A DNA stretch of 61,620 nt, filler included, from Platydemus manokwari (lineage: Eukaryota), in the NCBI GenBank assembly GCA_037951405.1. It is 5 parts of 5 records of this genome, joined end to end, with 100 filler letters (N's around TTAATTAATTAA, not from the genome) between each part and the next. Parts side by side here need not be neighbours in the genome. Positions count along the whole stretch, not along the records: positions 25,797 to 38,671 come from JBBMOY011932493.1; 4 more parts are not named here. One strand, given 5' to 3'. The position numbers and the translations under genes were made by a program. How positions within the stretch are numbered: position 1 is the first letter of the stretch; every line of letters starts with the position of its first letter. Below the pieces are notes generated by a model that was given only the letters and a program-made list of their open reading frames with translations, made no database searches and was not told the origin of the DNA. Positions 25,797 through 38,671 of this stretch are shown here, piece after piece.

Positions 25797-26079
25797 ATAA
25801 AAAATATAATCAAAACTAATCAAAAATTATTGAATGAGATCTTGGTTAAAATATTTAGCTCAATAAATCCCTTTAAAATGGTAATTGCGATCAATATGCA
25901 CTCATGCGTAACTGAGACAATTGTTCCAAATAATGATAAATGCCATTATTATAAATAAAAAATATAATCAAAACTAATCAAAAATTATTGAATGAGATCT
26001 TGGTTAAAATATTTAGCTCAATAAATCCCTTAAAAGTGGCAATTGCGATCAAAATGCACTCATGCGTAACCGAGACGAT
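25797..26079. repeat. Tandem duplication, ~158-bp period, at the contig edge inside a G-alpha-o intron
   Basis: ATAAAAAATATAATCAAAACTAATC...GCACTCATGCGTAAC starts at both 25797 and 25955, with near-identical copies. Confidence 0.85.
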
Positions 26080-26273
26080 ATTAATCATTTTAAATAACAA
26101 TATGACGTCATTAATTGGATATATTTAAAGAATGTATTGAAATATTAATCCCTGATATAAATAATCAATCAAATAAAGCCTCATCATGTACAGCCACCCA
26201 ATCAAGCGTCAGAAGCTCTCCCATGTGTCACCACATCGATATTGAACATACAAAATATTGAACCAAAACTCAC

Positions 26274-27262
26274 CGTCGTCTCATCCTCATGCAAAACTTG
26301 ATCATATTCACTCATGGCCACACAAAATATAATGGCTGTCACATCTTCAAAACAATGGATCCATTTTTTCCGTTCCGATCGCTGACCCCCGACATCGAAC
26401 AATTTGAAATTCATGTTTTTGAACATGAAATGGACTTCCACAATGCCAGTCGTTTTGATTCTCGTTCTGAGAATATCTTGTTCGGTTGGCATGTAATCTG
26501 ATGCGCCCAATCTGTCGATGTCGTCGAGAAAACTGTCGAGTTGTAAGAGAGAGAGAGAGAAAAAAAATCATTATTCAAATCGCATAAAAATCAGTACTAT
26601 TTCGCCGAATCATTCAATTGATATTCATTGGATCGATTGAAACATTCTTGGACCCCTGTATCAGCCCATAGACGTTTCGTCGCTTCAAGCAGTTCCTCGG
26701 AAAATGGAGCTGTATCTTCCATTGCTTGGATGACATCGGAAACGATTTTTGCATCACTCTGAAATAGAAAGATGACAACACAGTTGAAAAGCAAACAAGT
26801 TATTCATCTAATACTGATCTTTCAGGATCACCAAATGATATATTTAATGTTGTCATTGCACGAAGAATAGCTATCATTGATTGAGTTGTATTGCTATATA
26901 CAACAGGCTTATATTGTTTATTATCTTCACTAGTAAATCCGCCTTCATGAATAATCCTATGTTCATCATTTTAGCTTCAATATATCATTAAAATAACAAT
27001 CTAATTTACTTCATTTGCTTAACTATCGTACTTTTACCTGACTCACCAGCTCCTTAAACCCAAAAAACATATAAAAAACATGAAATTAATTTCAAAAACT
27101 AATTTCAAACTAATCTAAATAATTTCTAAAAAATATCTTCTTACCTAACAATAATAATTTGACATCCTTAGCAGCTTGAACACCATCTTCTTTCAATCTC
27201 TTATCAATATTTCTACTTTTATCCAACGCTTCTCGTTCATCTTTTGATAATGCACAACCCAT
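26274..27262 (-). CDS. GNAO1: Heterotrimeric G protein alpha-o subunit, 3'-partial; exons 27262-27145, 27052-27010, 26956-26815, 26758-26598, 26532-26274
   Basis: [15 protein letters not shown]|[14 protein letters not shown]|[16 protein letters not shown]..|..[10 protein letters not shown]|[56 protein letters not shown] and [11 protein letters not shown] are Go-type. Exon sizes are 118/43/142/161/259 nt. The remaining exons are lost at the contig break. Confidence 0.95.
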
Positions 27263-28539
27263 TTGAAAATAATATTTTTTTTGTCAACAATTAAAATTCC
27301 AACAAATAAAAGTTTAAAAATCGATACTCAAAAAATAATTTGAATGAATTATATAAACAAAAATAAAATCCACTTAATAACTAAACAAAAAAAATAATAT
27401 TAAATGATTCGCTGAATTAGAAAATTATAATTAACGTGTATGGCGAAAATGCAGAATGAATATTCAAAACGACTAACACCATCAACACTGTATAACAAGA
27501 TGTGTGCATCTAAATGTATCACACCTATAGAATGTGCTAACTAGCATATTCTACGGCAAATATATTGAAGTTGTGCAAATTTTTTACAATGATGTGTGAT
27601 GCTGTAAATATTGATTTGATTGAATGAATATATTTTTATTTTTAAAAAGTAACATTGCATTGTGAAAAATAATTTCAGGTAAATTAATCCATTTTAAGAC
27701 ATGGACAAGTTTATGTAATGAAGAAAATTAATAATTGAAATTATATATACAACAGGATTGAAATTTTTCAATTCGTTTGCAAGTTTTTTAAAAATATTGC
27801 CACTAAATTTAGGTTATCAATTTCTCGAATAGATTTAAAAAAATATTTTAATCCTTATTCTGATATCAAAAATTAACTTAATAAAAAAATTAATGAAAAT
27901 AATTTAATTATTTATTTTTATTTTAACTGTTATTGAAGCGCTTTTTATCATTTAAAATGGCTTAAATGTCAATTAAAATGTCGAATATCTAAATATATTA
28001 TTGATAATGTAGAATAGCGTTAAATTTAATGAAGCTGCATTATTACAAGCTTAACACATGTTGGAGATAATGTAGAAGTTATCAAGTCATCTATTACATG
28101 TAAAACAACAAGGGCAATATAATAAATTATTATTTTTATATCAATGTCCTAAGCTTATTAGAAAAAAGATGGTTTTGAAGAATAAACATTCCCTATCGAA
28201 CTCATTTACATGCCAAGCGGACAAACTGTTTTTGTCTTTCTTCATTTCCTTTTAACTCTAAGAAAAACTAGTTCTTTAATAATGTGATAAGAAAATTGGA
28301 AAATTTTTAAAAATCGTAAATCAAAGGTAACTTTTATATACATGGTAGATTGGAAGATCTTTTACATCCTTAAATCATGCGACAAGACATGCACAAAAGT
28401 AAATCAGATATTAGACCTCAATAATAAATACTTTAAATATTTTTATTTTTATATCTGGAATAAATAATAGTTTCCATTCTCAATTAGAGTAACTCAATCA
28501 AAAATAAATATAACAAAACCCATTGAACCAGTTGACTTA

Positions 28540-31116
28540 TTATTGTCGGTAATAGCATAGACAATTGTTATTGTCATAGAAGAAAGAGAATCGATTTTCC
28601 ATGAGAATTCTATTCAAACTATTGTTAGCATTGGAATACAAAGGAGTCGAGAAGGACCCGTAATTTTCTATCAATATTTCTGAATTTGGCACATACTTTG
28701 TTACTTCATATGATGCGCATAAGCATTGGTTATTATAGAGACGATTGACGAATTGCTTTAAAGATTCAAAACCAGAACAATGTAGAATGAAAAGAAATTG
28801 ATTATCTAATTCAGAATTTCTCTCCATAATAAAGGCAGTGGATTTCGAACAGGCAGTAAATTCTGTGATAAGTGAGAGAGGATTCAACCCAATGAGATTG
28901 GACTGATATCGACAAACATTGAGTATGGCAAATACAGCATTTCGACATTGACATTTTTTTTGGGTATTGAACAATTTGTCATCGATTTCTTGAATATCTT
29001 CAATCCAGAAAAGAGAACAAGTAAATGGAGAAACGAAAATATTAAGATCTCTTAAACATTTGAAGGGCTTTAAGAAAATTCGCGGAAGAATTTCAAAAGA
29101 TGTTTTCTGAATGTTGCAGTAGATACTTTGGATTCTACACATTCGAACTATTTTGCAATGGCTATTGTGTCGAATTCTGTTAATGAAGATGTGAGTAAAC
29201 CACAATGTTAAAATAAATACTGTTAATATACAGACAATATTAACAAAAATCAATGTTTTGTTTGTAACAAAGCAATCATATCTAAGATGACCCCGATAAT
29301 GTGGCCATAGTTCGATTACGTCCAATAATCCTGGCAAGATAATATTTAATGATGTCGCATCTCGTGGAAGTAAAAGTGTATAATTCTCTGCTAATTTTTT
29401 CTTTTCGACTGAAAGCTTGATAATTCTTTTGACTGCGTTTAATGAGGCGATTTTTGGAACATTTTCATATCTTCCAAACAAAGCGATACTCATAGATTTT
29501 GGGTTGTATTCAGCCCCATTAGCGCGATTTTGATGTTCCCAGCCTTTCGATTTATAAATTACTCCATCTCCTGTCACTATGAAATTATATGGAATTATAT
29601 TAAATCCCACTAGTAAATCTTGTATTTCTCTCATCTGATACGAGCAAGCTTCCTTTGTAAAACAGTTACAGAAAGGTCTTTCAGTGTCCGTTATTATTAC
29701 AAAAGGTACCGGAAAATCTGGGTATCCTAATTCTGGAAATGTAGTACTTCTAGCATACCAGTCTTCTCTGGAAAGGATTTCTAATTCCATGGAATCTCCA
29801 GAATTCATGTCGGCATTGTAAACATCACATTCTTCCATAGAACACTTCGGGAAATTGAACTCATTCACATTTGATAGCCAAAATGACTCATATCCTGTAA
29901 ACACTAGCTTCCAATTCATATTATCATATTCTGTCTCTATTGGGGATGTTTGACCACTTTTTGATATTAGACGAAATGATTGACTAATTTGACAATGAAA
30001 ATTTTCGAAGAACGTTGGCGAATTAGTATTAATAGGAGTAGAACATGAATGAATTCGATTGAGTTTACTTGGTAACTTGCCGCACTTTGAATGGTATATA
30101 TGCATTTGTTTATTATCCACTATTCGATGACAAGAGGATGATGTCAAATCATTATCTCGCGGAAAGGTTTGATTCGGAAAGCAATATGACCACACATAAG
30201 TTGTGAATTCATAATTGTTAGATGATTGTGTATCAGCACACGTTGTTTCATTATCTGATTCCAGCATACAAAATAAACTTGTCAAGCTATACCACGCTCT
30301 TCTACAATGACTATATTGCATACAATTGTCAAGACAAGCGTTATAGTTGTAGGTGTGAAAATAAAGATTCGTTTTTAAAGGCTTAGTCATTCGTTTTGAT
30401 CGATTCTCAATTACAAAATATCCTGGATCATCACCACTTCTTAAAGAACAATGTTTGGGAGGTATCGGTAACGTATAATTAGAAGCGCATTGCCAAATGT
30501 AGGTCTCGCTTGTTAAATTGAGTGACATTTTCAAATGTTCTACCGGAAATTGAATGATTAGTTCACAGGTGAATCTTTGGGAATTGTGATAATGCAGAAT
30601 ATTGATAGTTCCACAAATAGGAATTCTTAGACATTCCATCTGGCAATCATATAAATTTGCATTTGGTATTTCTCGAATTGGATCGTTTTCTCTTCTGGCA
30701 TTGAAAGACTTGTAATTTGGTTTATATTTCCAAAAACCTGGGCATCGATTTGGAACGTGCACACTCTTATTCGTATCACAGCATTCCCAGTAATAAATGA
30801 GATATGTCTTATCCATTATATTTGAATAACTGATATTTTCATACAAAAAACAAGATCTATTATCTATTCTGTATGCAGCCATGAAGCAAAACTCATCTTC
30901 GGCACAGGTATTGAAGCATGTGGCATTGTCAGGTTGGATGGAAGTGCTTAATAATTTAGCGTCCGGATTAGGAACCGAATATTGGCCTTTAGTATACACA
31001 CTTCCTAGGCATTTATTCACATTTCCCATGACACATTGATCAAATACTTTACCATCGATAACGATCGATAGAATTGAAAATAAAATGAAAATTTTGGATT
31101 TAAGAAAGATTAGCAT
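28540..31116 (-). CDS. Single-exon type I membrane receptor: signal peptide - 3x PAN/Apple-like - non-catalytic PGRP - TM - divergent TIR domain (858 aa)
   Basis: Hydrophobic N-terminus, aa ~1-22. Three CxxxC-x5-C..C modules (aa ~36-112, 125-210, 223-312). PGRP fold, aa ~446-607 (ILSREDW.AR, PVPFVII, IPYNFIVTGDGVIY..GW, YNPKSMSIALFG, WPHY). TM aa ~622-645. Cytoplasmic aa ~689-850 aligns by eye with the TLR2 TIR. PGRP and TM are high confidence; TIR is moderate. Confidence 0.85.
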   Translation of the reverse strand: MLIFLKSKIFILFSILSIVIDGKVFDQCVMGNVNKCLGSVYTKGQYSVPNPDAKLLSTSIQPDNATCFNTCAEDEFCFMAAYRIDNRSCFLYENISYSNIMDKTYLIYYWECCDTNKSVHVPNRCPGFWKYKPNYKSFNARRENDPIREIPNANLYDCQMECLRIPICGTINILHYHNSQRFTCELIIQFPVEHLKMSLNLTSETYIWQCASNYTLPIPPKHCSLRSGDDPGYFVIENRSKRMTKPLKTNLYFHTYNYNACLDNCMQYSHCRRAWYSLTSLFCMLESDNETTCADTQSSNNYEFTTYVWSYCFPNQTFPRDNDLTSSSCHRIVDNKQMHIYHSKCGKLPSKLNRIHSCSTPINTNSPTFFENFHCQISQSFRLISKSGQTSPIETEYDNMNWKLVFTGYESFWLSNVNEFNFPKCSMEECDVYNADMNSGDSMELEILSREDWYARSTTFPELGYPDFPVPFVIITDTERPFCNCFTKEACSYQMREIQDLLVGFNIIPYNFIVTGDGVIYKSKGWEHQNRANGAEYNPKSMSIALFGRYENVPKIASLNAVKRIIKLSVEKKKLAENYTLLLPRDATSLNIILPGLLDVIELWPHYRGHLRYDCFVTNKTLIFVNIVCILTVFILTLWFTHIFINRIRHNSHCKIVRMCRIQSIYCNIQKTSFEILPRIFLKPFKCLRDLNIFVSPFTCSLFWIEDIQEIDDKLFNTQKKCQCRNAVFAILNVCRYQSNLIGLNPLSLITEFTACSKSTAFIMERNSELDNQFLFILHCSGFESLKQFVNRLYNNQCLCASYEVTKYVPNSEILIENYGSFSTPLYSNANNSLNRILMENRFSFFYDNNNCLCYYRQ

Positions 31117-32615
31117 TGTTCGGAAAATGATAAATAAAGTTAATTCGAAATAAATTCAATACTTGAACTTTAACTGATCAACAACCGTTCTGTTTATGAC
31201 TTTAAATATCAACATGCTTGAATGTCATCAAAATAATTGTGGTAATATTAGAGATAATAATAATGATAAAAAGAATAAAACGAATTTGTATATTAATCTA
31301 AATATTAAAGATATCTATTAATTTCAAAACGTAAAGTAACTTATTTTGATTCTCTTCAATAAATTCGGAAAGTGTGAAACTCAGATCTAATATCTAATAA
31401 AAAATTTATGAAATCAAATCACTTGTGTTTTTCGTCACGTGTTTAATTATAATTAAGTATTATCATTCATCGAAACCAAGTGCTAGATCATTGAGAGTGT
31501 ACTGGCAATACTTTTTTCTCTCTCCATTAATATATATGAAAGTACTTTTCTAATTTATATTACCTTACTTATACTTGAGAGCTTCAGCAACAAGCATTCC
31601 GACTATTTTACCGGAGATTTGTTGAAGATTGGGGTATAAGTGACTGATGGAACAATTACATTCTCTATCAATGTATAAAATTTTCTGAATACCAAATTAA
31701 CTGAAATGTTAAACGTTATGAGGAACGTTTATTGATTCGGTCACAACAGAAATCGTAACTTAAAACTCCAATTTGGGTTAATAATAATTTATTTTAGATG
31801 TGCGAAATGTGAAAAATTGAAAACAGCAAAAAAATTTTGTAAATTGCATGGCTCAGTGCACAGACATATAACCACCACATATCCACTTTACGGATATCAA
31901 AAATATGACCAAATGAAGACAACGGAGAAATTAACAGTTATTTAGAACCGTTACTTTAACTTAATACAATGAAAAAATAAGAAAAATAATTTGCTACTTA
32001 CAATGAAGAATTTTCCAAAAGTATTTTAATCATATTCGTAGCTAAATATTCCAGTGCTTAGCGACGGTCTACTTTTGTGCTCTATTTATATATAAGGGTT
32101 GTGTTGCTCTTTTATTGATATTATATTGCTTCATCAAATACGGTATACTTTGCTTATAGCAGCTTTCATTGTCTGGTTTCTATTTTTATTTGAAGATCGA
32201 CTCAATTAATTATTTTTCGTCTGACTTATATTCTTTTAGTGATACATAAAAAGTGAATAAATAGTTCATCAAAATGTCAACTGACTACCCTCAAAAATCA
32301 CGGATCGAAACACACTTGTGACATTGTAAGACGAAGAAGTGCAACTAAGATTAGCAGAATAGACATTAATTTGGACTAGTCATTGGATACTAATATATTA
32401 CAATTCATTACAAATATCTTCGACTGTAGCGGTTAGATTTTGGAATTGTCAACTATAGCAAGCATCTGTGGACAACCATCAGAAACCATCCGAGATTAAT
32501 GAATGACTATTGAAAATAATAAATTACAATATATCAATTTTTTTACACAAATAGACATCAAAAATAAGAAATTTTATCTAAATTAAAAACACTTTATCAT
32601 TAAAAATTTTCAAAA

Positions 32616-33080
32616 CTAAAAATAACATTTGTTTTGTCACCTCAAAATTAAGATTGTTTAATCGACATCAAGGTCATAAGGAGAATTTAATCAAAATCTT
32701 AAAATAGAAGTCGTGTCATGTCCAAAAATAGAATAACCACAAATGTTAGCCAAAAATAACTTTTACTTAAAAGATACCAAAAATAGTAACACTTGACAGA
32801 ATGATACTAAAAATAGTGACATGGAGCATAAAACACGCACATGGAAATTGTATATAAATGAGTATCACCAGTGATTCCTCACACATTTTTTATTTTCAAA
32901 TTTATTCAATTTTTTATTATTACAAGAAGCTATTTTATTATTTTCAAATTCCTATTACGAGAAGTGTTTGCTATCAAGAAAATTCATTTTGTAATCAATC
33001 TATATGCCAATGAGTAAATTTTTTATTGTTTATTTAATTAATTACAGACCCGTGACTATTTCTAGCCTTCCAATCTTTTA
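32616..33080 (+). repeat. Dispersed repeat copy 2 with MEF2/CArG-like sites and a TATA box
   Basis: CTAAAAATAA 32616, CCAAAAATAG 32722 and 32777, CTAAAAATAG 32807, TATATAAAT 32851. Homologous to 289-650. Confidence 0.55.
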
Positions 33081-33909
33081 AAATAACATAAGCGTTTCCA
33101 TCTTTAGTTTCACACTTTCATATTTTACTGAGAGGCGTGCCCCACCATCTTGGGGGTACGTCCTATACTTTTGTCTCGAGGGTTCTGTACTTGTAAATTA
33201 CAATCGCATTATATATTATCTTGAGTGTAATCAAATTATTTTAATTAATCTAATAAATATATTTTGTTGCCATTCTATTGATTCTACTATAATTATCATT
33301 TATATTTTAAATATTATTTCGATTATTACCGATGATTAAACTACACCAACAACCTCATCTGTTAGAGCCCAGACATGTTAAAGATTTTAAATAAAACCTC
33401 TCTGATATATAAGTATTAATCAATATTTTTTCCAAATTGTGCAACTTAAATAAAAATCACAAATCAAAATCTTTAGCACATCGTGAATGTTCAGAATGTT
33501 GCATAAATTTAATTTTTGGAGATTTTTTCCTCATCTTCTCCGTCAGTTTCTGACTTCCAGTAATGCACTTGTGTGGTTCACGGGGATTGGTTGAAAATTT
33601 TGTTCTTTTGCGATTTTAAAGTTGTACTCTTCGATTATTTCTAAACAAAATTTAATTGCATTATAATGGTACCACGCATAGAACAATACAAGATAAAGCC
33701 TTTGACTATGGATGTACCAATCTAGCCGAAAACCGAATCCTCAATCCAATTTCCAATCCAGCATTGATTTGATATTTACAGCATTGACTATATAACTCTG
33801 GTGTTTTATATTACTTTATTATTGGTGTTTGTAAATGAATGATTTTTGTGAATAATCTTTATAAACTTTTATGATGTTGACTTTCATAAATAGTGATTAA
33901 TTCGTGCAA

Positions 33910-34660
33910 TGTAACGAAGCGGGGGAAGAAAATGAGGAATAGAGAGTGGAAAATTATTATTAATAATAAAATAAAATAACAAGAATGAATAATGAATACA
34001 ATATTTATAAAGAAATAAAGAATAAAGAATAAAAAACCGATGCCGAATAAGTAAATAATAAATAAATAATTTATAACAAATAAATAATAAAATATGTTGA
34101 CAAAAGTGAAATCCGAATAAATATTCGAGGAATGTCGACAAAATGCAAATCAATTGTCGACGGTAACAATGTTACCAAAAATAGAAGGCGGAGACCGGCA
34201 CAGCGAGGTATAAATACCGAGCTGAAAACAGAGCTGGCCACCACAATAACCACAACCATAAAATCACTAACAATCACAATCGAAAAATCACACAAGAATT
34301 CTATATTGAATTGTAGTGGATCAGTCGGAATTGCGAATCGAGAAGAAAGTCTGAAGAAGAATTCATTCAAGCTAATTATTACGAGGATTTATTTTTATTT
34401 CAATATCCATACTAGGATTCGTTTTTATTTCAATATCTGAGTAAGAAGTATTTTATTTCTTATTATCATTTTCAAGTTCATCTAACTAATCGTTCGATTT
34501 GTAAATTACTAATTATATTATCGATATTAAACATAATTGATAATTTATATGAACCGTAGTAAGGTTTAATTTTGCCAATAAACTCTCTTCTTCATCCTGC
34601 ATATCTTTCCTCCGTCCGCTTCAGACTCTGCTGGCTACTTCCTGAGGCAACGTGGCGGCT
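33910..34660 (+). mobile_element. Putative Gypsy-type 5' LTR followed by a PBS-like TGGCGGC
   Basis: Starts TGTAAC. Internal GTATAAATA (~34208) and AATAAA (~34577). Ends ..GCAACG, directly followed by TGGCGGCT (34653). No second LTR seen. Confidence 0.35.
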
Positions 34661-35789
34661 ATTTGAATCATATTTTTGTTTAAATTCTTACACTGTGCTG
34701 CCTTTTATTTCTTAAAATATATTTGTTTAAAACCAACAATTGTGTTTATTTAAGTCCGAGTTAATAACAGTAGTCAATTAATCCATAAAATTAACTCACA
34801 TAAAAATTTAAACTACATTATTGCGTATCATTCTATTGTGTTTAAGAGAATGATTAACAAATTTAATATTACAGCGTTCGAGATCAGTGTTGGGTATCAT
34901 CGAGAAGGACTAAGTCATTAACTAACCCAATAGCGAGGTCTTCATACTCGTTATTGAAGCCCCTTAAGAGCCAGTTAAAATACAAAGCCTCAACTTATTT
35001 AACAACTTTATCGTAATTCAAATCCTTCTGATAATAATAACCGAATTAGTTTGTATCTTTTTACAAATTGTACACTCGTAATCTGAACTTATAGTTATTA
35101 TAAGTCATCTTAGTAATCATTTAATACTATTGTTCGATTTCATTCCATTATCTGTTTAACATTTATTGCTTGATTTTTTATTTTGTTTTCATTCTTTAAA
35201 TACTATATTAATAATTTAATTATCTCGTCACAGTTTTCCATATTTTCTATTCTATACTATTATCAACATTATAGTACTATGATCGCCAAAAATAATTAAT
35301 ACCCATGCTCGCATTCTTAAATCAAAATCAATAACTGTAAGATACTGTTGAAAAGTGAAAAAAAATCACAAACAAAAAAATTAAATTATCAGATAATAAT
35401 CTTTCAATATCAAACTAAAGCCCGCTTAAGATGAATGATATGGATTAGCTGACAAATATTTCCGCTGTAATAAATTGTTATTATGTCTATTAAATTGTGC
35501 GCATTGTTTATATTGGATTTATCTTATGAATCATCACTTAATAATTTGAATAATTTTCATTTTCTACCAATTCAATGAAATTATTTATTTTAATCTGATC
35601 ACATTTTCATCACTTAACTAGAATGATGATTTTTCACTTCGTTAGTCTCGATGACTAATACTTTTATTAGGGTATTGTTTTCATTCGATATAATTTCTTA
35701 TATATTATTGGGTATTATAATCAACAATTTAAACCATTATCGTCCAAAATGTTACAATCTCAATCACAATCACTACAGTTAAACTTCTC

Positions 35790-36103
35790 AGGGAACTTTT
35801 GTAGGCTTATTGGGTGTGTCTGTTTGGTATCACGGTATCTTTGTTTTCCATTTGCTGAATTCGTTCGTAGATCGGCCTGCATGAAATTTCCCTCGTATCT
35901 CTTATGTTATTGGCAGATATTTGAGTTTGCTGCTATTTGTAGGTATGCCCCTGCCGATTCTTAGCTTTTAAATATGGAATAATATTAACACGAATCTAAT
36001 TGCCTGATGGCGCATGTGCTTATCGGATCTATATGTCGACCTTTTTTAGAGTTATTTCCTTGGTTCCTGTAACCATTTTGGTTGATTTGTGATCAACCCA
36101 ACA
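35790..36103 (-). mobile_element. Second, inverted copy of the TGTTGGG..CCCAACA LTR-like family
   Basis: Reverse complement begins TGTTGGGTTGATCACAAATC and aligns colinearly with 1076-1370. It may extend to TGTTGGGTATC at 34888. Confidence 0.55.
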
Positions 36104-37292
36104 ATATGAATTATTTATTTTTAACAATATCTTTTGTTGGATTTCTATATAATTATATTGTTGCGAGTTCTGGTCTTGGTCTACTATTCAACTAGACCAA
36201 GATAAATTGCAATTTCGAAGAACAACAACCAACAACAATAGTCCAATAACAAATACTAACAATCTCAAATTCCATTTCAAGTGAATATTACTTATCGAAA
36301 TTAAAAATAGCTAAATGCTTCAAAAACTGTTATTAATTTAACTGTTATAGTTTGATGGGTTTAAGATTTGATCAATAAATTTTATTGTGTTTGTAAAAAT
36401 ATGAAAAATTAGACTTGATATTGATTCGATAAATATCTGACTCCAAAATCGGTATATGATAAAACTTTGGTAGAGAACAGTTTAATTTGTAGAAAAATAA
36501 TCAAATAAATATCGAGATAATTAAAATATAATTGCAAAACAAATCATAAAACTAAGATTTATTTAACATAAACATAATTTTCTTGGGGATGCGGTGGCAC
36601 ATATCCAATACATAATGGTAATGGAACTGATTAAGAATAACAAATAAATACTGTTAATTAGATGTTAACAAATAACCAGGAATTTTATAATATGATTAGT
36701 TTTGTTGATCAGAATATTATTTGGTTATATTCAGGTAGGCCTTTTCTAAGGAGACGGCTCTTATGTCGATGACCGTTAGAGACCTTAGATATCACTACAT
36801 ACTTTAAAGTAGTTAGGGATTGACTTTCTCGTAACAATGATTTTGCGTCCAGTTTAAATTTTATTTGTACTTTAGTTGAATTGGTTTCAATATTAAGTTT
36901 CATGCAAGTAACTTTAAAATGAAATATATTTCTGTGACAAATCATGAAAATAAATGAATTTACTCTTTCTTTCGAGAAAATTTCGCTGGAAATGGAATTG
37001 ATTTGTATTTGAACAGTTCTATGAACTTATTGTAATTGACGTAATAGAGATTTATAATTGACGTTTTATCATTGTCTTTATTTCTGCACAAACAGTTCCA
37101 ACTTATAATGATTAATTAAAATTGATCGATTATTTCTTTCAATTTGAACTACTTGAAGGTACGAGTGATTTACTTGAGAAAAAATAAGAGAATCCTGTGG
37201 ATGCAAAATATAATTTTTTGTGCTTTGAGCAAATTTGTTTATTATTTCTCTGTTAATAATTCAGTGTCAAATAATTAAAAGTCTGTCTAGGC

Positions 37293-37500
37293 CAGTGATT
37301 CCCAAAGTGGTCCATATTGACCCCCAATGGTCGATGAGGACCTGCAAGGGGTCTACGTGGGTTAAACAAATTGCGGGGGGTCAATGGGAAGAATTTTTCA
37401 AAAATGGCAAAAATAGTATAATTGATACAATTCTAATATTTAAAAAATTATAGTATAGTGTCTACCCAAAACAGAAAAACATGGCAAGGGGTCCTTAAAA
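37293..37500 (+). mobile_element. hAT (Charlie-like) element left end
   Basis: CAGTGATTCCCAAAGTGG terminus preceded by GTCTAGGC, which resembles the NTCTAGAN target preference. GC-rich subterminal GGGGTC motifs. No right end identified. Confidence 0.45.
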
Positions 37501-37949
37501 CCTCCTCACGCTCTGGTAATACTTAATTTTTGAGGGTTTAAACGATCTCTCACCAACTTGCAAGAATAAAGCCTAATAACCAGTCCATAGCATTCATGGA
37601 AACATTCAAATCAATTCAAAATAAAAACAAACATCTAACAAAAATTATATAAACATAAACATCAAACAAATATTAAATGAGTTGCCGCACTGACAAACAA
37701 TCAAATAAAAACACAATGTATTCATGAACGAACATCATGAAGCAAAAACAGCCATTTGAAAAACAAATCGATAAATAAACAAACGAGTGAAAATCAATAA
37801 TAAAAAGATATCAATCAGATCAAAAACAAATAATTTAAAGGCCAATCAATAAACAAACACAATCGAATCAGTAATGATAAAAATATTTATAAACAATCAA
37901 TCAAAACCATAAACAAATCTATCTATTTACATCGAATAAAAAATCAAAT

Positions 37950-38607
37950 TCAAATTTTGGAATATTTTTTCAGAGCCTCCTCGATTTTTCTGATTTGAAT
38001 TTGTTTCTCTCTCAAAGTTTTCGTGGTTGCACCTTGATAATTTAATCAATTTTATTCGATTAATTAAATATATTTACTCTTGCTATTGTTTACATTCAAT
38101 TTACATTTATCGTTGGTTTTCTTTTCGATCTGAAGTTTCTTTGATTTCTCGAGAACTTGTGAGATTTTCTCCTGAATCAATATCGTCACCAAATATCGAT
38201 TTGCTTTTGGTTCTTACTTTATCAATGATACCTGCTTCATTTTGAAGTTCCTGGGAGATAATATTTTCATCGTATTCATAAGTTAACTCAATGTCATTCA
38301 CAGTTTTGGGTATTGACCATTTTGCTAACAGTGTTGTGTTTGAAATTTTCAATTTGTTTATCCTAACAAATTATGACAAAAATTGTAAAGTGAATCAATC
38401 TCACATTTCAATTGCTTTAGAAGCGTCATTTTTGTCATCATATGACACGAAACAATAACCTAACGATCGACCCTTGTCCTTGCCTTGTTTATGAACTGGA
38501 AAATTAAAGGTTTTTATCTTTCCATATTGAGTCAATATTTTAATAAGAAAAAATTCCGTAATATTTGTTGGTAATCGAGTTATAAAAATATTATTAGTTT
38601 GATTCAT
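37950..38607 (-). CDS. RBM18: RNA-binding motif protein 18-like (single RRM); exon 1 38607-38405, several short introns, last exon 38032-37950
   Basis: NIFITRLPTNITEFFLIKILTQYGKIKTFNFPVHKQGKDKGRSLGYCFVSY..LLAKWS carries the RBM18-type FxFxxHKxGxxxG..GYCFV insertion. The C-terminal QIRKIEEALKK resembles RBM18 KIKAIEAKLK. Frame is restored by 42-, 46- and 72-nt GT-AG introns, plus a probable in-frame 51-nt intron. Confidence 0.8.
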
Positions 38608-38671
38608 AAACTAATATGATATTATTTAAACAAATCGAAAAAATTTCGTATTCTAAAATCTAAAATTAATT

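Follow-up and report, generated by a model that had tools for sequence, protein, structure and literature searches.

Introduction

The closest described systems to the receptor reported here are the long PGRPs of flatworms. In S. mediterranea, Kumar et al. (2026) described PGRP-L1 to L4, proteins of about 800 aa laid out as signal peptide, PAN, PGRP and transmembrane (TM) segment, and both InterPro and CDD place a single PGRP domain in the planarian long forms, the amidase residues being confined to the short ones (PMC13453010). The same study reported that RNAi of planarian PGRPs led to a higher bacterial load and that docking, which is prediction only, accommodated ligands in 7/7 Smed PGRPs; TIR is nowhere mentioned in it (PMC13453010). 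The rumen fluke Calicophoron daubneyi has eight long PGRPs of 700–1200 aa with one TM segment downstream of the PGRP domain (PMC11727788). In the work of Arnold et al. (2016), RNAi of planarian pgrp-1 lowered infection pathology and the gene was scored as an 'activator', a phenotype common to RNAi of pgrp-1, tak1, tab1-1, mkk4, mkk6-1, p38-1, jnk and xiap (PMC4993586). Schmidtea and other planarians have no Toll-like receptors (TLRs), and carry about 20 TIR proteins plus MyD88 and SARM (reviewed in PMC7958881).

According to the data of others, members of the flatworm family are expressed in gut, epidermis and stem cells, are induced by infection and injury, and give RNAi phenotypes. A more distant comparison is with Drosophila PGRP-LC and PGRP-LF, which are type II proteins with a RHIM-like N-terminal tail and without PAN modules.

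Gene and Genomic Context

The window, meaning the whole stretch of DNA analysed, is 61,620 nt long (filler included) and comes from Platydemus manokwari (GCA_037951405.1), with positions 25,797 to 38,671 derived from record JBBMOY011932493.1. This piece has no N stretches and carries, on the minus strand at 28540–31116, an intact ORF of 858 codons from ATG through to stop, whereas 200 shuffles of the piece gave no stop-free run beyond 133 aa. Together with a full-length homolog (P0001, below) these observations point to a single-ORF gene for a long PGRP, and the intact 858-aa frame of an earlier, sequence-only reading is borne out. A 4874-nt contig of the public run X1 spans the ORF with 0 differences, but this run appears to be genomic and could be the source sample itself, which makes the agreement non-independent. 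None of the RNA runs searched carries the gene.

A second contig of X1 (record 6, 2563 nt, corresponding to about 28560–31120) is collinear over the entire ORF, with an unchanging offset, has about twice the depth, and includes the tail motif at aa 692–708; of 17 listed differences, 10 are at third codon positions. At least one further close, intronless PGRP paralog is present in X1, possibly as two near-identical copies.

Short AT-rich stretches flank the gene (27890–27945 and 31232–31437); in X1 their summed depth is very high and their loose ends are numerous, and these are dispersed repeats. Elsewhere in the piece, two tandem repeats (34380–34437 and 37621–37675) have periods of 30 and 28 and about two copies each. 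A gene fragment with an RRM domain (RRM_1, E = 1e-11) and short introns lies at 38610–37950 on the minus strand, and we take it to resemble RBM18. A G-alpha(o)-type gene (27262–26274, minus strand) is represented by 241 codons in five exons (27262–27145, 27052–27010, 26956–26815, 26758–26598 and 26532–26274) separated by introns of 92, 53, 56 and 65 nt; it has no stop and runs on past the piece, and within its intron at the edge of the piece (about 26080–25797) a stretch of about 170 nt occurs twice in near-identical form. Nesting of the PGRP gene within the G-alpha gene was ruled out, as the ATG of the latter is at 27262, 1.3 kb downstream. An AT-rich composition and the G-alpha introns of 53–92 nt are compatible with a flatworm genome.

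Domain Architecture and Family

All features given below are on the minus strand. The protein begins with a signal-peptide-like hydrophobic N-terminus (about aa 1–22, 31051–31116; hydropathy 2.35), and its only internal hydrophobic segment is a TM helix (aa 622–645, 29182–29253; hydropathy peak 2.68) followed by basic residues, with none inside the tail. Since these two elements are accompanied by 11 of 12 N-glycosylation sequons N-terminal to the TM helix, a type I topology fits, and the sequence supports the signal peptide, single TM helix and type I receptor that had been proposed. In being a predicted type I protein with a similarly sized cytoplasmic domain it is like Toll-like and IL-1 receptors; unlike them, it lacks an ectodomain of LRR or Ig type and shows no detectable TIR.

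Three PAN/Apple modules occupy the N-terminal part of the ectodomain (aa ~36–113, 30778–31011; aa ~125–210, 30487–30744; aa ~223–312, 30181–30450). Each has a Cx3Cx5Cx(11–15)C motif, starting at aa 67, 158 and 261, respectively, and the four full-length family members all retain the three motifs. In the P. manokwari protein Pfam PAN_1 matches three stretches below cut-off (E = 0.0033), with weak PAN_1 and PAN_3 signals in the first module, but it clears the cut-off in the homologs P0001 (at module 2) and P0005; the sole PDB match of the family profile is an apple module, 1HKY (E = 0.083). The three modules named by the sequence-only reading are supported on these grounds. Between the third of them and the PGRP domain lies a conserved module that the earlier reading lacked (aa ~329–430, 29827–30132), with four to six Cys and 13 invariant columns in four members. 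It has no match in Pfam or PDB, and a C-type-lectin-like interpretation was dropped for that reason.

The PGRP domain (aa ~446–610, 29287–29781) could be confirmed by one above-cut-off stretch of Pfam Amidase_2 (E = 2.9e-6) and by PDB PGRPs matching aa 425–610 with E down to 3e-17. The zinc ligands His/His/Cys are all replaced (His by Thr475, His by Pro584, the Cys lost), so the domain is non-catalytic; of the amidase residue set (the three ligands plus Tyr), Tyr510 alone remains.

An exhaustive search for homologs gave three full-length proteins (P0001 and the more distant P0005 and P0006) with the same layout, and a tail-only fragment, P0019. P0001 is 41% identical (E = 4.5e-204), and P0006 is S. 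mediterranea PGRP-1, AFJ24867.1 (full-length match, E = 1e-33, 23% identity); the translated pgrp-1 qPCR primers of PMC4993586 fall in aa 275–305 of P0006. In an unrooted tree of 54 PGRP domains a branch with 98/85 support sets the four full-length members apart from the other domains, and they form two subclades, one holding the P. manokwari protein as sister to P0001 (100/97), with which P0019 also belongs, and the other including P0006. The present protein and Smed-PGRP-1 share one clade and a homologous tail core (Cys780, Cys798, Cys800), but differ in that they are 23% identical and that the subclade of the former has a tail about 45 aa longer, with extra conserved Cys.

Taken together, the sequence is best read as an additional member of the published flatworm long PGRPs (planarian PGRP-L class). 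Like Smed-PGRP-L1 to L4, it is about 800 aa long, and it has a signal peptide and TM segment (by hydropathy only), PAN modules and a single PGRP domain without zinc ligands and hence of non-amidase type, and it shares its descent with a long PGRP of Schmidtea. To judge from their published description alone, the C. daubneyi proteins are alike in having the TM segment after the PGRP domain (PMC11727788). The architecture had been put forward as novel, subject to its not being described already; PAN-PGRP-TM has in fact been published for planarian PGRP-L1 to L4 (PMC13453010), and long PGRPs with a TM segment for the rumen fluke (PMC11727788). What is new is only the unnamed cytoplasmic domain and the Cys module, also unnamed, that precedes the PGRP domain, neither of which is described in the text of PMC13453010.

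Two further observations were made on related sequences. Translated, the reverse primer for pgrp-4 in PMC4993586 reads FLGMDN, which differs at a single position from FIGMDN in P0005 (aa ~335–341), and because of this similarity the infection-induced pgrp-4 may be a long PGRP of the same family. A hemichordate protein, P0092 (Glandiceps talaboti XP_077989182.1), combines a pesticin-like lysozyme domain and DUF6973 with two PGRP domains.

Proposed Function of the Receptor

The reading that we favour, at a probability of roughly 0.7, is a non-catalytic type I receptor in which PAN modules assist clustering and the Cys-rich tail docks an adaptor upstream of TAK1-MKK-p38/JNK. At gut or epidermal surfaces the PGRP groove would bind peptidoglycan but leave it uncut, the PAN modules would contribute glycan binding or receptor clustering, and clustering would gather the conserved Cys-rich tail domains into a docking surface for an adaptor upstream of TAK1/TAB1-MKK-p38/JNK. 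The architecture and family membership are shown; what we infer is binding, clustering and the role of an adaptor. The pathway placement derives from the RNAi phenotype shared with tak1 and the others, which concerns a distant paralog and is not a direct link, the functional data coming from the other subclade (P0006, 23% identity). A comparable arrangement would be Drosophila PGRP-LC/PGRP-LF, which are likewise non-catalytic membrane PGRPs and are a model for how the receptor may work, by sensing upstream of TAK1; unlike them, the P. manokwari protein is predicted to be type I, with a folded tail at its C-terminus.

The state of the binding groove bears directly on this model. Tyr510 and Gly-Phe are retained, and the Arg position still has a basic residue, which makes peptidoglycan binding plausible, but two binding motifs, His-Thr and Gly-Ala-His, have changed, the His of the latter being Asn or Ser across the whole family, and because of this drift the 858-aa copy may not bind peptidoglycan itself. 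It could then act as a co-receptor that does not itself bind, as a decoy, or in uptake or adhesion (compare Drosophila PGRP-LF or LCa), rather than as a primary sensor, a role for which the two divergent subclades and the further paralog would permit heterodimers and with which a tail free of known signalling motifs would agree. The retained groove residues argue against it, as do the predicted fit of ligands in every docked Smed PGRP (PMC13453010) and the 'activator' score of pgrp-1 (PMC4993586), and we regard this alternative as unlikely.

Cytoplasmic Tail

The cytoplasmic tail (aa 648–858, 28543–29175) is a Cys-rich alpha/beta domain whose proposed length of about 210 aa held good at 211 aa. 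It is 27% and 35% identical to the tails of P0001 and P0019 (E = 1e-27 and 3e-36), and weakly homologous to those of the other subclade (hhalign E = 0.02); E765, C780, C798 and C800 are invariant in 5/5 tails. Because it is conserved among homologs, the tail is under selection. Word-index searches gave no additional tail homologs past P0001 and P0019, and two metagenome scans, a plasmid tblastn and Atlas feature searches were all blank. No known signalling motif was seen in the tail, and tail profiles matched nothing in PDB at E <= 10. Structure models reached pLDDT 35 from the single sequence and 49 from five sequences, too weak for fold searches, and Foldseek, VIA-align and Atlas searches with them were uninformative.

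The predicted order of elements, helix-helix-strand-strand-helix-strand, would suit a degenerate ferredoxin-like/palm domain (GGDEF, nucleotide-cyclase or similar) serving as an interaction or ligand-binding module. Consistent with this, an hhalign alignment (P = 0.02, probability 2%) placed aa 772–796 on the beta3-helix segment of GGDEF, at the register to be expected, and for the P0001 tail an Atlas model gave a weak match to the C-terminal domain of a GHMP kinase (target-based TM 0.47). However, a 67-sequence GGDEF HMM scored all tails below 0 bits, within the range of shuffles, and the tail has no GG(D/E)EF motif; hhalign against E. coli GGDEFs gave 0.1%, Pfam gave no match, and the fold was not seen in structure searches, themselves made with the low-pLDDT models. 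The idea originated by eye and fared no better than the TIR match discussed next; a palm domain is improbable.

The sequence-only reading had identified the tail as a TIR domain, and the protein as a 'PGRP-Toll chimera', from three segments aligned to TLR2. The quoted tail segments are present in the sequence, but as TIR markers only the box-1 fragment beats shuffles (p = 0.006, against 0.24 and 0.18 for the others; 1000 shuffles, with the three TLR2 fragments as quoted in the earlier reading). That fragment, a box-1-like F-V-S-x7-W-I-E, was chosen post hoc and stands out in 2/5 homologous tails, those of the P. manokwari protein and P0001, and is not significant in P0019, P0005 or P0006; for the other two fragments the best local match was not always at the position originally given. 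Taken in order, the three fragments exceed 98–99 of 100 shuffles in the same two proteins. Every sequence or profile test of the TIR assignment left it unsupported. The TIR families (PF01582, PF13676 and kin) in Pfam, NCBIfam and PADLOC gave no match in the five tails at E <= 10, a language-model test saw no TIR in this tail or the four homologous ones, a three-sequence bacterial TIR profile scored all tails at shuffle level, and TcpC-based hhalign lent no TIR support. As positive controls, TcpC scores Pfam TIR at 1e-13, and with the same tool its TIR alone retrieves TLR1/2/6/10, plant TIRs and Hydra TRR-2. The next strand follows the supposed beta-C after about 9–10 residues, with no helix predicted in between, against a distance of about 25 residues that includes helix C in TcpC; the BB-loop Pro-Gly, WxxxE and helix E/box 3 are absent from the tail alignment, and past the third anchor 14 residues are left, with predicted strands. 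Within the limits of the literature searched, no paper on a PGRP-TIR receptor was found.

A strongly degenerate TIR that has lost helix C and lies beyond profile detection, so that the family would couple PGRP to TIR adaptors, gains from the box-1 and ordered-fragment scores, from the many TIR proteins, MyD88 and SARM of TLR-less planarians (PMC7958881) and from structure models too poor to count against it, but given the blank Pfam, NCBIfam, PADLOC and PDB searches beside a working TcpC control, and the missing elements, it is very unlikely, some room being left for it because HMMER filters discard weak matches and only five tails were compared. If the tail were such a TIR, TLR-less flatworms would be using PGRP-TIR receptors in place of Toll.

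The tail appears instead to be a lineage-specific, conserved alpha/beta domain of an unnamed family that is not TIR. It is reasonably likely to be an undescribed signalling domain, which would explain signalling by PGRP-L proteins that have neither RHIM nor TIR.

Conclusions

The gain from this locus is modest, because the receptor class has already been published. Planarians are nevertheless without Toll-like receptors, and both signalling and binding by membrane PGRPs are posed as open questions in PMC13453010. The tail is a conserved folded domain, with cysteines that do not vary across two subclades; for these questions it offers defined residues for mutagenesis and a bait with which to pull down adaptors.
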